From the NCBI GenBank assembly GCA_002104905.1, contig MCFE01000013.1, positions 1-64,000 on the forward strand: DNA of 64,000 nucleotides. Direction: 5' to 3'. The position numbers and the translations under genes were made by a program. Origin of the DNA: Basidiobolus meristosporus CBS 931.73. Lineage: Eukaryota > Fungi > Basidiobolomycota. Below are positions 45,055-64,000 of the stretch, piece after piece. Below the pieces are notes generated by a model. It worked only from the letters and a program-made list of their open reading frames with translations. It had not been told where the DNA came from and did no database searches. Position 1 is the first letter of the stretch; each line of letters opens with the position of its first letter.

Positions 45055-48000
45055 TTAGCCAGCCCGGATTCTAAATTTAGCACCACCGGCTGTCATGGTG
45101 GTGGCGGTGGTATTCGCGTCAACGTGATAATTCGGCCTGCCACTCGATGGATTAGTGGTGGCAGGATACTGACTCTTGTGTGGTCCCTTATGATACACTT
45201 GCGGGGTACTCGATGGTGGATTTCTTCCTCGGGAGTGGTTTGACGAAGGAGCAGCTGTTGGATTAGGGCGGAGCTTGTTGGATGTTGGGTATGAGGGCTG
45301 AGGGCGTAAGCACGTGGATGATTTACTGGGCATTTTCATCGGGTATTTCATGTGAACCGATGTCCGAAGCTCTGGTGATGTGGTGGAGGTGATTGGGGCC
45401 TGCAGACACTGGACAAGTTCATGCCCGGATAATATTGGCGAATGCGTGGAGTCCTCAGAAATGAGATGATTCTTCAATCTACGAATGATCATCTCCAGTT
45501 CGGAGTTCGTATGGTTGAATGTGTTTGCAAAGGTGGTGGTGATTTTCTCGAGCCAAACGGTGCGCTCCCCGGCCGACTCCACGCCAAACATGAATTTCTT
45601 ACGGGATTGTCCACTGCTATCTCCTGGAAAGCCGATCTGGAAAGTGTGTTGCATGAACGGGGGCTCGACTATCACAGTCCAGGCTGGGATACTGGAGTAT
45701 TTCCGACTTCTAGCACCGAGTTTGATGAACGTCATACACTTGCGTCCCAATGAGGTGGCCTTCACCGTAAACGTTAGGGAATTGGTGTAGGTGAAATCAA
45801 GCATCGGGGTATCGCAAACCAAGCCATCACCCACAGGCTTGATTCTTAGATCTCGGTCAGCTGCAGGAATCGTGATAGTAAGACGGGTTGAAGTACCGTC
45901 GATCACAAGATGGCAATCCAACGGGAATCTGGTCTCGATGGAAAGGGCCTGGTAGTCCCTGTCGTCCAGTGCGGTTTCCAACTTGTCCTGGCGGATAGAT
46001 TGAAATATCTCGATCAGGGTGCTTTCCGGGATATCGGAATTGGCATCCATCGCACGGAAACGCTCTATGAAATCAGGGAGATCCATCTTCACTTTCGTGG
46101 GGGATTTCCGGTTGTGCAGGTCGGCGTTGAGGGCCATCATAAAGAATGCCAATTTGATCGCCGTCTCAACATCGTACTTCACATATTGTGTGTTCGCACG
46201 ATGCCAACGTCTGGCAAATGCCCCAACCAGATAATCTATCACATTACCATCGCCAGGTAGCCGGAATGAGGCCAGGAAGACTCTTAGAGCATCGTCAATA
46301 CGTATACCAGCAAACTTGAACCGATCTAAATAGGAATTGAGGATGGTGTGATTGCTTGGCATCCCAAGAAACTTCCCTATCTGCTTCCGGCTAAGCTCAG
46401 GGGTTTTATGAAGGAAGGTGGAAATACTAAGTGGATCCGCACGAAGAGCACCTTTATCAATCATATACATGATGCCTTCGTACGGATTCACATTGAAACG
46501 GCGCACTGTGCTTGCGATGAGTGGATGCAACTCGCCCATTGGATTGCGGGACGAGGAAGGCGCCTTGCCGTCTTCTATAGCTTTTCTTCCCTGACGCTCC
46601 TTTTCTCGAGAGGCGGAGAAGCTAATACTGCTCAGATCGATAATATGCTTCACCATAAACCGCGAATTCAAGGTGTAGTTATGCGAGGCTTCTCTTGAGA
46701 CTGGTTTTGCAACCACCAGCAAGTCGTTCATCAATAGTAAGTATCGGTTTTTTACTGCGTTACTATTAATGATTTGCAAGGCAAACCCTTGATAGATGAC
46801 GCTCCGCGTTTCGTTCCAAGTGGGTTTTTCGATCTCTTTTGCTTTGTTAGGGCCTCTGGAAGGGTTTTCGGAGACCGGTATTGTGACGGCCGTTGATGAC
46901 TGCTGAATGGTCGAATCCTTCCCACCATCGTGTTCGTCATTTGCCAGTTGAGGAATAGGTTTGGTATTTTTGGTTGCATGAATTCCCTTTTTAGTTGAGC
47001 TGGCTTCTTTGGGTTTTGTGGATTGATCGGCATCAGCATCAACTTCGGTCGATTCTAAACTCACATTCAAATCCTGCTTACTACCATGCCCTGGAACCCT
47101 ACTTGCATCTGGTTTATCGCGCACTTTGTTGGAGGCGGGGGTGTTTTCCGGTTTATACAAAGCATGCTCGCTGGCCGAAGTTGGAGTGGTGCTAGCGACC
47201 TCACAGTTGACTGATTCTTCGGAAGAATTATGGTTACAAGAAACAATGCTTTCATCGGATGAAATGGATTCGACCGGAACGGATTGCTGCTGTAGGAGGC
47301 TCTTCCGAGTGACATTGGTATCAATATGAAGTAGCTGTGGTGCAATTCGCCTAGATTTCCGTCGTAGCGAATTAGATTGCCCAAGGATGGAGGGCTTTTT
47401 CTTCTTTAAATGTGGCAGTATTCCTTTGACTACTCCAGCCGACTCAATCATGCTGAAACGCTTTATGTAAGGTACGCTAATTCGTGAGTTATGGATTGAC
47501 TCCGTTTTGGTTTGAGTGCGAGAAGTTGAAGAATCAACGGGCGAATCCTGGTTTTTGTCAGCTATTATGACTGATGACTCGGTAGGTATTCCATCTTCCG
47601 GTGTGGCTGGTATGCTTTTACTGGCTTCGTTACCTTCCGACGAATCCCCAGGGATAGCACAAGGCTGTAGGATAGGAGAGTCAGAGTCAAGCTCGTTTTC
47701 GCGGAGCGAAGTACTGCCTGGTGGACTAGTGCTTCGAGGAGAAGCCGATAAATCTAATCCTTCTAGGGAGAATGGTAGATTTAACCTATCGGTGAGGGCA
47801 GTCAAAAAGAAGGAAGGTCCGATGTCCGAAGGAGAGAGGGGGGACGGTGAGCGCTCATCTTGATCTGGGATTGATTTCGTTGCGGAGAGGAACGGGGAAA
47901 GTAAAGGACTAGGAGGGATTGTAACTTCTACCGCACGATGATCGTCTTTTGATTCCTGTGGGTAAACGATTTGAGGAGGCGCTTCACTTGGCATGGGTTT

Positions 48001-49324
48001 ACCGGTTGATAACTGTTTTCGCTCAGCAATGTCTTCAACGATAACCGAACAAAGTTTCTCCTTGGTTAGCCGCATCTCTAGTGAAGAGCGGGTGTTGAAT
48101 TGTACTCGAGATGCTTTGATCTCTTTGCTCGGAGGAAACAAGCCTTGATATTCATCATTTCGAAGTGAAGAATCTGACACCAGTTGCTCCGGAACTGCTG
48201 GTTGGAATAAGGCGCGCGACTCACTTGGATTCTGGATCACGATTCTGCTCACCTTTGGCTTATGAAACTTGATGGCTCCTGATGAGAGCTTTCGAGTAAT
48301 GGAAGAAATTAGATCCAATGCATCCTCTGGTGTCGATGCTTCTCCGCTATCGGAGTAAACAAGACCTAGTGAAGACGTAGGTGTGTCTGCACCTTCCGTT
48401 TTCCAGCTTTTCATGATCCCCGAGATACGGTCTCTCTTTGGCTCCTGGGTCGCATTAAACTTTTGCGAGAAAAAGCCCAGGGGCCCCTCGGAGTAGACAG
48501 TATTTGGCTCTTTCTCCCGGTATGCGTGAGATGAATAGGTACGAAGTAACTCGGCATTTCTGGTGGCTCCATTAGAGATGGCATTGAATGAACGCGATCT
48601 TCGAGCCAATGGACGTTTCGACATTTTTATTCCCAAGCTAGCGCCCATAATATCATCATGTTCACCAAATGAGCTGTCCTCGATTTCTAGGTTCAGTGAA
48701 CAAGATCAACGTTAATAAACTAGAGCGCACACACAACTTTTCTTCAAACATGATCGAACCTTGAGGGGTCTCAACGGGCGATTGTACGCACGGTACTTGA
48801 TCAGCTTGATCCTCTTCGGGTTGTTCCGGAGGCTCCAGGAGTATCCCCGAATTTAGTTCCTCATTGAATGACCTGGACCTTCTAAGATGTTTCCTTCGAT
48901 AGCTCATTTCTTTCGTATGTGATGCCTCTTGAGTTTGATCTAACGGTATGGAAACATGTTCCAAAATGGCCTCAGTGTCATTCAAGGAAAGAGATCTCCG
49001 TAAAAGTTTACTCCTTTCTTTCCGCTGCTCTTGTTTATCAACTGGTCCCTTTCTCAGACCATGACTGGGAATTTTGTTAACTCGTATGGCTGCTGCACGT
49101 CTGAGTTTGTTAGAGGTTGGGCTTATTGGACTCTCTTTGCCCCTGTCTCTGACGTCTAGGAATCCAAAGCTCTCTGAAACCGAGTTCAGCAGACTACTGT
49201 CCGTCTGGATAGTAAGCCCCTTGAACCCAGAGGGCGGACTCTGGGTAGACTGTGCATTATCGGACGGGGTGGAGCTGTCCGCAAAGAAGATGGGTAACGA
49301 AGGTGGTAATATCGAGTCTTCCAT
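45055..49324 (-). CDS. Atypical Sec7-domain (Arf-GEF-like) protein with PH elements and long disordered N-terminus, 2 exons
   Basis: RFNVNPYEGI..LSRKQIGKFLG..IDDALRVFLASFRLPGD..LAFFMMALNADLH, plus a second ORF at 48662-49324 joined by a short intron. Confidence 0.85.
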
Positions 49325-50840
49325 ACATCCAAAATTTCCCGCTCACAAAACGAGGATGTCGCGGGGCTGATAGAAAAATGGCTTTTCGCTTGTAGAAGTA
49401 ACTGTTGAAGAGACAAAGTAAGTTGAATGGTTCGAATTTTGAGAAGGAGACCCTCGCTGTTTGGATACGAAGGTTCAACGGCTCAAGGGCTACTTGGACG
49501 TAATACTGTTTGCTTGGCGGGCTATTTTACAAATACACTTGGACACGAGGGGAAAGGTATAGTGTCACGAAAATACAGTTGGGATAGATATGGTAGTTGT
49601 ATAGGCTGACTGTGTGGCGTGCAAGCGGGACGGAGAATCTTCTAAGTTGGAATCAATAAAACCTTTGGAAATCTCAAGTTGCCTTGTCACCCAAACTGGT
49701 ATTGAAGTCTGAGAAGTGAAGAGAGGTTCGAAAAGGCTAAGGTACAGATTACTGCAACGAAAAGGGAGACAAGTGGTGAAAAATACTGTGGTGTTTCAAA
49801 GTTCCAGCGAAAAATGCAATCAATAAACCCGCCCAATTAGTGCGCTAAATATACAGTATATATTGAAGGGGTAGTATATGGAGGAAATATAAACAACTCA
49901 ATAATCCAATAATAATGTGGTATCCATTTGGTGAAAACAAATTACTTTGACCAGAAATAGAATGTCATGTAACAATTCATGTATCCCTATCATATCCCGC
50001 TTCAGGACTACCTCAGTGCCTACTCATTAGTGCGAAAAAGGGACTTGACTATACTGAATGTACGTTGAAGAAACATTCATATGTTCTCTGCAGCTCTGAT
50101 CTACACTTCCTTTTCATGCGAGTGACTTGTACATTAGTAATATTGTGCGACACCAAATAAGCTGCATCATTGGGATTGGAGCAGTCCACTGTAGTGTGAA
50201 ATGTCATCCTACAGGTTCACAACGTGCTGTCCATTCTCATTATTCTGTATATTGAAATTAAGCAATTTTCTTGTGCAAGCACTTGAACTCCTGGAGCATC
50301 AATGATATGACCTTATTGGGGACCGACATACATTTTGATATCTCGATCCTATGCTGCTTCATTGATTAAGGAGCTACTCGATAAATTCGATATAAACTAG
50401 GTCTCTGGCCTATCTCTTTCGATGTAGACGAAGCGATACCAGTCTGCTTGGCAGAAGTTGTTTGCTTGCCAATCCACCAGTAGAAACGCCATTTAGAAGG
50501 CAACGACTGATAAGGCGGTTGTAGCCTAATGGAAAAGATGCACTTTTATATCTCTAGTATGTTTTGTGAGCCACGGTAGACTGGAAAATACAAGCACCAC
50601 GTGGTTGAGACAGAAGACTCTCGAACCAGTTTCAAGTGTTGTTTGCCGTAGTCGTTGGCTCTTCTAGGCATCTATGATCAAGGACCACGTAAATCAATGC
50701 ACCTAGAATGTATGCTCAATGAAATGGCGAATTTATTCATATTTACGTGAAAGTGATTTAATTATGTGAACCGGAATTTTGTAATGTCCATAATGAATTA
50801 ATTGTTTGAAGAGGTAGAATATCCTTCACTCATAAGTTAT

Positions 50841-52265
<1,425 letters not shown>

Positions 52266-58016: not shown

Positions 58017-59609
58017 CTAACTTCTGATAATACTCTTCGCATTTACCGATCCATTAATATCATGATGCAGGTCTTCAATGCCACTATCTAGGGGCCCTCG
58101 CATTGCATCGAGAAGTACATCGTGAACTCTCAGGCAGTGATGACGTCTTCTGACAAACATTACTGGCCTAGTTGCAAGCGGGCGCGGGTGACTGTAATTA
58201 ATGGCGTCTAGAACAGTGCTGACTTCTTCGTCGGAGTCCAATACTCGGTCTTCCACCGGGCCCGCACCGTCACCAGTGCCGGAGCCCGCGATGCCATTTT
58301 TCGTTTCTGGATTCGCACCGACAGTATCTAAATAGGCTAGTTGATAACCAGAAAAGTATGGTAAATGCTAGTGAAGTACGTACTTTTCAATGGCTTGTTA
58401 AGAAGGTTTTTCGCTTGATAGGCCTGAAGTAGGATATCGTATGGCTGTGTGCGCCCGACGACTGCTCTCTTGGAGGCCATAGAGTGGTTCTTGCAAGTGA
58501 GTGATCTCGTACAAGGGGTGTTATTAGGGCCAGCAATAACACCACATTGGCGATCCAAATCCAATGGTCCTTGGTGATGTGAAGGGATCATTCAATATTG
58601 CTACGAATAAACTCATCACCAGTGAGGGTTATAAAAATACCTTTGACTCTTTTGATGGTGGCTTTCTTGGACTTCCCCTTTACCTTTTTCGATGTTGATT
58701 TGTCTTTCGTCGGATCAGTGGGAAGCCTTTTGCCAGACATCATGGTTTCGGTGTCATCTTTGGCAATATATGATGGTGTGAGTTGATATGAACAGGCAGC
58801 TAGAATGTACAATGATGATGCTGACCATCATTATTGCCCTTTCTCTTCTTCTCAGTCGATTTCTTGGTTTTCTTGGTAAGTTTCGCCAAGGCTGCCTTTC
58901 CACCTAATGGCTTGGTACATTTTTCTGTAATGTCAAATGGAATTAGCACACTGGTAAAGCTATTAAGAGTACCACTAGGATGTTACCGCTATGCTGTAAG
59001 AAATTACAAGGCAATATCGGCTTTGCACAGTTATTACATGTTACTATGGCTAAATCATTGGGAAGCCCTATGCCACCGACACTAGACATATGTACAAAGA
59101 AGTCAAGGAAAAATGAAAAATTGCCATTGTGAAAAGCGCAAGTGTATTAGCATCAAGGATATATTCGTATTGAATTTTTGTGGTGACTGGCATATCTGAG
59201 GCATCGAAAGACTCAGAGACAGCCTTTTCTTCAAGATCGACTAAATACACGTGTGTTAGTAGGTACCTCTATATTGTACAACGAAACATCACTCACTCTC
59301 GAATCGATTCAGAGTATCACTGAAACTTTCCCAAGTACCCTCTGACAGCGGAGTGTGTTCTACAACCTCTACTGAAGGAAGGCGATTCCAATCTGCTTCT
59401 TTCTTGAAAACCGTCAGCGTTGTAGGGCTCACAAACGATAGCCACGAGTTGAATGCTATTTTTGATTTGAGATAGTCATTGGAAACCTTCTCAATGTCTG
59501 GGGGAACCTTGTTTAGTTGAACTGGCTTGAAATTTTGAACTGCAACACACACCTTTTTCCAGATCTCTGACTTGGTTGAGTTTTTTGATAAGGACTTCTT
59601 TTTGCTCAT
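58017..59609 (-). CDS. SGF73: SAGA deubiquitinase-module subunit Sgf73/Ataxin-7, multi-exon, including one AT-AC intron
   Basis: N-terminal Zn finger [20 protein letters not shown]|EKC, SCA7 domain [39 protein letters not shown]-terminal DSDEEV..PRPL. Confidence 0.92.
59092..59162 (-). other. U12-type (minor spliceosome) AT-AC intron, 71 nt
   Basis: 5' site ATATCCTTG, branch site TTTTCCTTGAC (A at 59103), 3' end TTTGTAC. Removal joins GAA T|AT ATG (EYMSSVGG..) in frame into the Sgf73 Zn finger. Confidence 0.9.
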
Positions 59610-59986
59610 CTGAGAGAAGGTCCCAACCAGCTAGTAAAAAGACAAGAATATAAGTAGGAGTAGCGCTTGCAGCACTAGTGATGTAAAGAGTACAGTACGT
59701 GGTTTGCTTGAAGACATGACAAATTACCAACTGAGTTCCCCTGGTGAGTTACAACTGGATGCCTACCACAATGAACCACAATTTACACCAAAATGATTCG
59801 GCTTAAATCCAAGTCTTAAACCTCATATTCAATAGACATTGCTCAGTGATTCCAGCTGCTTGATTAATGTATGTGATTGTTTTGACATATCATCCAACTT
59901 GATCTGATCGTTGTGAGTATTTGGATATTTTCCATAAACCGAATCAATACAGGAATCCTGGTTTCCTCAAAGATTACAACTTGACC

Positions 59987-61031
59987 ATGACCCAAAGCTT
60001 CACAAATACACATCGATACTTCCTGCAAGGCTGTTTAGCTCAGAGATTTCTGAAGGAGACTGAAGCAATAAATTTACTCCGTCGTGCGTGTGAAATAAAT
60101 CAAGGTAAGTCCGTTATTATTTCAAGAATAGCTTTTGAAATGCTGACCCTCCTCACTTGCACTGTCAGAACCCTTTGACGAGAGTCTATTTGGCGAATTC
60201 ATTAACACGATAAATGAAGGCATAAATTCCCTGGATCTGGAGTTTCGAAAATCTCACGACGAGGAAACTGGCGAATCTGTGTTAGCATTGGTACTGAACG
60301 TCATTTTATCGTTATAACCGTACAGGGTTCTTGTTTTCTTATTGGGTCAACAGGTAAATACAAACGGAGACGAGATTGCTCAACTAGCCACCGACTATAC
60401 GCCAGCGGAGTTGGTTTATTTGCGTCGCATTGTAAGCCTCACGACCACACTTCGTTGTTCAGTATATGTGTTTACGAATACTTAATTCAACCCAGATAGA
60501 ATTGATAGTGACTGCAGACGACGAGTCATATTCGGTCTCTTCCTTGTTAGCATTGAGTGAGGCTGGCAAACTCAAATCTGCCTTCACAAAAAATGCTGCA
60601 GAGCAATTGCTAGACAGATTTGTTGAGGACAAGTGGTTCTCCAAAACTAGGTAGATTGGGTGCTTTGAGGATCGTAGCTCTCACTATGCTAAAAAATTAT
60701 ATGCAGCAATGGCCGGTATTATCTTACACAACGGTCAATTCTGGAACTTCAAACCTATCTCAAAGAAGAGTTCGAGGAGTATATCTTGGAGTGCACATTG
60801 TGCATGGATATTGTTACTCGGGTAAGTATGGTCGTTCTCTCGAGCTCTGATGGCCTATCTAACCCCGCACTTGACCATCCCCAGGGTGAGCGCTGTCAGG
60901 TTGGCAGCTGTAGCGGAAGACTACACCTCCACTGTGCCGAAAGATACTTTTCCGCGAGGCCTGATCGCAAGGTGTGCCCACTCTGCTCCACCGCATGGAC
61001 CTCATCGCAGAAAATTGGGCCTACTAACTAG
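59987..61031 (+). CDS. NSE1: Smc5/6 subunit Nse1, 6 exons
   Basis: HRYFLQ..; LDLEFRKSHDEETG..AL|VNTNGDEIAQLATDYTPAEL; AEQLLDRFVEDKWF; RING-like CTLCMDIVTR|GERC..LHLHC..CPLC. Confidence 0.95.
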
Positions 61032-61502
61032 CTCAGTTGTTTCGCAACAATCATATTTTCGCTGGACAAATACTTGCACTGAGAACATGCTAGTGTTTTC
61101 CATCTATGGAGATCACTGAACATAATTAGATGTAAATAAAAGACGGGAGGATTATATCGTATATTTATTAATTCATAACATTATTTCAAATAACTCGTGA
61201 GAATAAGAGTAGAGGTGCGTACTTGGGGACATCGTTGAGAAGGTAGCGTGGATAAGTCATCAGGGGTTGAATTCAAGAACTATATTTTGTAAAAGCAATA
61301 AATTATCTCATAAAACCGTACAAGATGCCAACTAGAAAAAATGGTAAGGAAAACTCAGCAAGTCACAAAAACACAAGCCAGGAATCTGGAAAGTAATAGA
61401 TGGTATGTATATGAAACAAGGTGGGAGCTAATAGGGGCGTATGAATGTTAAGTGAAGTAGACCTGTGTTAAAGGTGGAATGGTAATGAGCCAACTGAAGT
61501 GT

Positions 61503-64000
<2,498 letters not shown>

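Follow-up and report, generated by a model that had tools for sequence, protein, structure and literature searches.

The stretch 59162-59092, read on the minus strand of the window (the whole 64-kb stretch of DNA that was analysed), is very probably (with a probability of roughly 0.9) a U12-type AT-AC intron in the gene of Basidiobolus meristosporus CBS 931.73 that is orthologous to Sgf73/ATXN7. The intron is real but ordinary: it is already present in the public model of the gene, and it lies in a fungus that has already been published as rich in minor introns. The additions made here are modest and consist of an intron position that is shared with a distant fungal lineage and of corrections to the annotation of this gene and of its relatives.

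The splice signals can be read directly from the minus strand, where the boundaries are ...CAATACGAAT/ATATCCTTGATG...TTTTTCCTTGACTTCTTTGTAC/ATATGTCTAGT (a slash marks a splice junction). The whole context is CAA TAC GAA T/ATATCCTTGATGCTAATACACTTGCGCTTTTCACAATGGCAATTTTTCATTTTTCCTTGACTTCTTTGTAC/AT ATG TCT AGT, in which the middle stretch is the intron. The sequence features by which a U12-type intron is recognized are all found. Beginning with the first base of the intron, ATATCCTTG matches /[AG]TATCCTT; TCCTTGAC matches TCCTTRAY at the usual distance of about 10-15 nt from the 3' splice site, and the branch A at 59103 is 11 nt from the last intron base. Once the intron is removed, the split codon T/AT (Y) leads on into ATG TCT, and the frame is that of the exon which encodes the N-terminal zinc finger of Sgf73; the intron sits directly 5' of the codon that opens this exon. 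The frame is thus restored, the protein is colinear with its homologues, and the signals are kept in a distant relative (contig L001, described below) while the interior of the intron diverges. The first-pass annotation had proposed an AT-AC intron at 59092-59162, and its coordinates, U12 5' site, branch site 11 nt out and in-frame join are all correct in the sequence. The likeness to the catalogued U12-type introns of B. meristosporus and Rhizophagus irregularis extends to the /ATATCCTT donor, to the AT-AC termini and to TCCTTRAC placed 11-12 nt ahead of the 3' end, and no difference in kind from catalogued U12-type AT-AC introns was seen. The length of the intron is typical of the introns of the Sgf73 gene. 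The features of the gene are collected in Table 1.

Table 1. Features of the Sgf73/ATXN7 gene and of its U12-type intron, in window coordinates.
Feature	Position	Strand	Evidence
Exon 1, MSSSKP and first base of P codon; absent from public model	59699-59717	minus	Matches P0186 N-terminus
Exon 2; absent from public model	59553-59630	minus	Comparison with P0186
Exon 3; absent from public model	59297-59497	minus	P0013, BLASTP E = 9e-10; P0186 match
Exon 4, ends with T; public start ATG 59193	59163-59240	minus	Public protein, frame
U12-type AT-AC intron, 71 nt, phase 1	59092-59162	minus	Sequence, public-protein junction, homologue alignment, contig L001
5' splice site ATATCCTTG, U12 consensus /ATATCCTT	59154-59162	minus	Sequence
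Branch-site word TCCTTGAC, branch A 59103	59102-59109	minus	Sequence
3' terminal AC	59092-59093	minus	Sequence
TAG stop met on intron retention	59068-59070	minus	ORF 59068-59250
Exon 5, zinc finger	58987-59091	minus	Cys/His align with homologues; Pfam Sgf11 weak, E = 0.025
Exon 6, basic linker	58826-58924	minus	Public protein
Exon 7, basic linker	58641-58757	minus	Public protein
Exon 8, SCA7 zinc-binding domain	58384-58569	minus	PF08313, E = 2.1e-27
Exon 9 to stop codon; acceptor 58327 or 58306	58017-58327	minus	B. ranarum and public models

The chance expectation for such a set of signals was assessed by searching for a composite of ATATCCTT, 20-300 nt, TCCTTRAC, 6-14 nt and AC. The full composite occurs once in the window, and when the whole 64 kb was shuffled 300 times with the dinucleotides preserved, it was obtained in two of the shuffles (both strands), a count that precedes any demand for the coding strand, for a place between coding pieces or for a restored frame. 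The donor word alone (ATATCCTT or GTATCCTT) is not enriched, with 7 occurrences observed in the window against 4.2 expected, and at the six remaining [AG]TATCCTT sites of the window no branch site is suitably placed. The plus-strand word at 50819-50826 was tried as a U12 donor and rejected: ATATCCTT is followed by TCCTTGAT 59 nt on, with no AC or AG at the right distance. This site is antisense within a 439-residue ORF for a Cys/Met-metabolism PLP enzyme (50841-52160, minus), and its ATATCCTT is taken for a chance match.

The identification of the gene as Sgf73/ATXN7, made in the first-pass annotation, is borne out by its domains. The SCA7 domain (PF08313) reaches 95 bits, where the cutoff is 23, and homologues can be aligned to the zinc-finger exon. 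Exon 5, together with the EKC of the next exon, forms a C-x2-C-x11-H-x4-C finger that conforms to the N-terminal Sgf11/Sgf73-type pattern (C-x2-C-x11-H-x3-5-C), and in an alignment with homologues (alignment A1) its Cys and His positions vary little or not at all. The Pfam match of the lone zinc-finger exon to the Sgf11 type is weak and below threshold. A PDB sequence search gave no match for the zinc-finger exon and only noise for the ORF 59609-59298. The protein resembles yeast Sgf73 and animal ATXN7 both in its SCA7 domain and in an N-terminal C-x2-C...H...C finger that follows an M-K-T-[FY]-G-like block, and it shares an N-terminal W...TL.VF..W region with its Mucoromycota homologues. Sgf73/ATXN7 is the SAGA subunit through which the deubiquitinase module is attached to the complex, and by orthology the Basidiobolus protein would be expected to anchor a Ubp8/Sgf11/Sus1 module in the same way.

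The protein that results from AT-AC splicing aligns well with its fungal homologues. In alignment A1 it is free of gaps over the junction, where a 16-residue block of the spliced protein pairs with the homologue sequence SPVTTRLDVKDMDIFGA; an example homologue reads SPVTTRLDVKD-MDIFGAMPLEEEFVVVKCKNC over the same region. The block [ST]..L...[DE]-M-K-T-[FY]-G..P runs uninterrupted in about 100 proteins from Mucoromycota, Mortierellomycota and Basidiomycota, and a clean YYD-MKTYG join is present in the Rhizophagus models P0153, P0157 and P0160.

The intron was also found outside Basidiobolus. One metagenome scan with alignment A1 gave 13 loci. The protein encoded by one of these, contig L001, is 84% identical to R. 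irregularis Sgf73p, and the contig is therefore assigned to a glomeromycete. Its DNA reads AAT TAT TAT G/ATATCCTTTAAAC...GATTCCTTAACTACTCCTAAAC/AT ATG AAA ACG TAT GGC, and positions 258-328 (G/ATATCCTTT...TTCCTTAAC...AC/AT ATG) form an AT-AC intron that is also 71 nt long, with the branch word TCCTTAAC and a branch A 12 nt from the intron end. The intron has the same phase and the same codon position as that of B. meristosporus and lies directly before the same M codon. Between the interior sequences of these introns no convincing alignment was obtained outside the splice signals. The R. irregularis model P0153 joins ...RLNYY-D-MKTYG exactly as the splice in L001 predicts, and a related contig (L002) is continuous over the site; it represents either a transcript after splicing or a copy that has no intron. 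Judged from these sequences, the intron position is old: an AT-AC U12-type intron is common to Basidiobolus and Glomeromycotina.

The homologous intron seems to have been treated unevenly in public gene models. The Sgf73 protein of B. ranarum (P0186) carries 17 extra residues (ILQNNEITFSVSNIIVH) at about positions 128-144, exactly at the intron position. The insertion starts with IL, the translation of T/AT ATC CTT, and ends with VH, the translation of ..GT AC/AT. On the evidence of this protein model, it looks like a homologous U12 intron that was mis-annotated and read through from ATATCCTT...AC/AT. Six Glomeromycotina models (P0156, P0161, P0162, P0164, P0165 and P0168) carry an insertion at the site or skip a finger exon there: D-IL...KH-M is seen in P0161, P0164 and P0168, the D-IL start only in P0156 and P0165, and only an insertion ending in KH-M in P0162. 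These protein models suggest that the same AT-AC intron has been handled inconsistently across Glomeromycotina. The first-pass annotation had stated that standard predictors miss AT-AC introns; this does not hold for the Sgf73 gene of B. meristosporus, the public model of which (ORY06816.1) contains the junction, but seemingly does for the B. ranarum model and for several of the Glomeromycotina models.

Elsewhere the intron is absent or the evidence is of other kinds. Contig L003, a Mortierellomycotina-like genomic contig that is nearly identical to Entomortierella parvispora P0185 over the compared segment, has an intron after the finger and none at the U12 site, and contig L006 is also continuous over the site. 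The evidence on the site in Mucorales and Dikarya consists of gene-model proteins. As the U12 position is common to two deep fungal lineages and absent from the Mortierellomycotina-like contig, it offers a convenient marker for the loss of minor introns in fungi. Five further loci (L009-L013) hold an animal-like, not human, ATXN7 finger exon that includes ...DRQLFGFCPAKDNFFVVVCEIC... and ..DRQLFGFCPAKDNFFVVVCEICKLPFKPQTF.. (for example L009, 200-370). The frame and a weak alignment seem to run through the homologous site in these loci, yet an acceptor-like ttaacag/AT is found exactly there, so that the exon boundary is uncertain. No [AG]TATCCTT match is present in loci L009-L013.

The occurrence of a U12-type intron in this genome agrees with published surveys. 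With 249 minor introns (0.554%), B. meristosporus is reported to exceed in minor-intron density every other fungus known (Larue and Roy, NAR 2023, PMC10639083), and a second study reported 237 minor introns, genes for U11, U12 and U6atac, and a U4atac candidate that is divergent (Olthof et al., NAR 2024, PMC11347168). A working minor spliceosome, as proposed in the first-pass annotation, is very probable from the published introns and the U11, U12 and U6atac genes (PMC10639083, PMC11347168); since both the introns and the snRNA genes had already been published for this species, the proposal is right but not new. No snRNA gene, nor a member of any other Rfam family, was detected in the window at the gathering threshold (whole 64 kb). 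No paper came to light in which this intron is named or in which ATXN7/Sgf73 is connected with minor introns, and ATXN7 is not mentioned in those portions of the MIDB paper supplements that were accessible. The intron is probably one more well-formed example among the approximately 250 published for B. meristosporus, with little import beyond annotation.

Established knowledge of the minor spliceosome allows the likely course of splicing to be outlined. The donor ATATCCTT would be recognized by U11 and U6atac, and TCCTTGAC, the branch A of which is 11 nt away from the end of the intron, would base-pair with U12; catalysis would involve U6atac/U4atac, and splicing would join 59163 to 59091. If the intron were retained, translation would stop 92 nt further on. 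The stop near 59068 that the first-pass annotation had predicted for the retained form is indeed present, as TAG at 59070-59068 ends the ORF 59068-59250. Both zinc-binding modules, the finger and SCA7, lie downstream of this stop, and only the spliced mRNA would therefore yield a protein with both.

It could be speculated, in line with the first-pass annotation, that the intron also acts as a regulatory gate, such that the amount of full-length Sgf73, and hence the assembly of the SAGA deubiquitinase module, is limited by slow removal or by regulated retention of the intron. The premature stop ahead of the zinc finger and SCA7 would suit such a role, as would an intron position kept in two distant fungal lineages. 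In mammalian cells minor introns are reported as rate-limiting switches (PMC3728624), and in Rhizophagus the retention of minor introns varies modestly by cell type (PMC10639083). However, the same generic retention property belongs to any of the approximately 250 minor introns of B. meristosporus. Premature truncation on retention holds for most coding minor introns. Further, the published survey favours a largely neutral evolution of minor introns (PMC10639083), the effects seen in the only fungal expression study of minor introns were modest (PMC10639083), and the Mortierellomycotina-like contig L003 does without an intron at the site. We consider a gating role very unlikely. There is equally little to favour the broader proposal that the AT-AC position has been kept since before the split of Basidiobolus and Glomeromycotina for its effect on full-length Sgf73, the level of which would be set by slow or regulated splicing of the intron; this would couple the activity of the SAGA deubiquitinase to that of the minor spliceosome. 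Nothing suggests more than an ordinary constitutive minor intron.

Splicing of this region by the major spliceosome was considered by enumerating the in-frame, stop-free GT-AG, GC-AG and AT-AC pairs at the intron site and judging them against the homologue alignment. Three stop-free GT-AG pairs are in frame, namely 59212/59082 (131 nt, with the donor GTCTTT), 59087/59050 (38 nt) and 59087/59044 (44 nt). All three are weak and fit the homologues less well than the AT-AC pair, and were rejected; only 59212/59082 is to be taken seriously as a rival. The first-pass annotation had stated that no GT-AG pair restores the frame; since 59212/59082 does so, if weakly, that statement is not strictly true. 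The use of this pair by the major spliceosome, with the U12-like words being coincidental, would be in keeping with the loose donors found elsewhere in the Sgf73 gene (GTAACA, GTCAGC and GTATTT) and with a CCTTGAC that could double as a U2 branch site. Such an intron would, however, remove 21 residues, including a PVTTK..M block that is free of gaps in the homologues, and at 131 nt it would be about twice the length of the other introns of the gene (55-77 nt). The public model does not splice 59212/59082, and the glomeromycete contig L001 shows the U12 words again at this position. A GT-AG intron at this site is therefore most improbable, and a U12-type AT-AC intron remains the best reading of the sequence.

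The public record supports the AT-AC junction and also shows where the annotation of the gene can be improved. Exons were searched singly, and the junction was judged through public proteins. A protein search with the SCA7 exon only returned P0001 at 100% identity, which is ORY06816.1 of B. meristosporus CBS 931.73. Taken piecewise, ORY06816.1 corresponds to 59193-59164, the split codon TAT and 59089-58988, and its junction reads ..KIQYEY/MSSVGG.... As it matches the exons of the window including this junction, the public model already splices the AT-AC intron from 59163 to 59091. To our knowledge, ab initio predictors use only GT-AG and GC-AG boundaries; the junction thus probably reached the public model via transcript evidence, and may be regarded as indirect transcript evidence for the splice.

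The N-terminus of ORY06816.1 is a different matter. Exons 1-3 and the beginning of exon 4 are missing from the model (window 59717-59194, minus), which amounts to about 119 N-terminal residues and includes the conserved Sgf73 N-terminus. Exons 1-3 match B. ranarum P0186 nearly residue for residue, and the match of the exon 3 region by BLASTP is to P0013 of Phycomyces nitens. From comparison with P0186 and the Mucoromycota homologues, the public model is concluded to be N-terminally truncated, and the start of the gene is placed at ATG 59717. A start at ATG 59609 (ORF 59609-59298) was dropped, as this frame reads through a 55-nt GT-AG intron. Translation from a downstream ATG, either 59193 (the start of the public model) or 59089, would turn the upstream exons and the intron into a 5' leader, and several gene models (P0021, P0024 and P0151) do begin exactly at the M after the intron, but the conserved N-terminus encoded upstream (P0013; near-identity with P0186) and a public model that itself spans the AT-AC junction make this exceedingly unlikely.

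The last intron of the gene (window 58383-58307, minus) has two in-frame acceptors 21 nt apart, ..tttag/ATACTG at 58327 and ..tccag/AAACGA at 58306. The later acceptor (58306) is used in the public model and the earlier one (58327) in the B. ranarum model; from the sequence, the pair may represent alternative 3' splice-site use. For the annotation of these genomes, the useful points are the gap of about 119 residues at the N-terminus of ORY06816.1 and the apparent mis-handling of the homologous intron in the models of B. ranarum and several Glomeromycotina.

Several other observations were made in the course of the analysis. The neighbourhood of the Sgf73 gene includes a Sec7-domain GEF encoded by a single 1197-residue ORF (45055-48648, minus), an Nse1-like RING-finger gene oriented divergently from Sgf73 (60300-61100, plus) and a protein with three WW domains (62812-63942, minus). 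The search with the SCA7 exon also returned proteins with an unusual multi-SCA7 architecture, in which three to six separate SCA7-like stretches are present in each of P0002, P0030 and P0035 (1892-2026 residues) and in each of P0003, P0014, P0026, P0042 and P0097.
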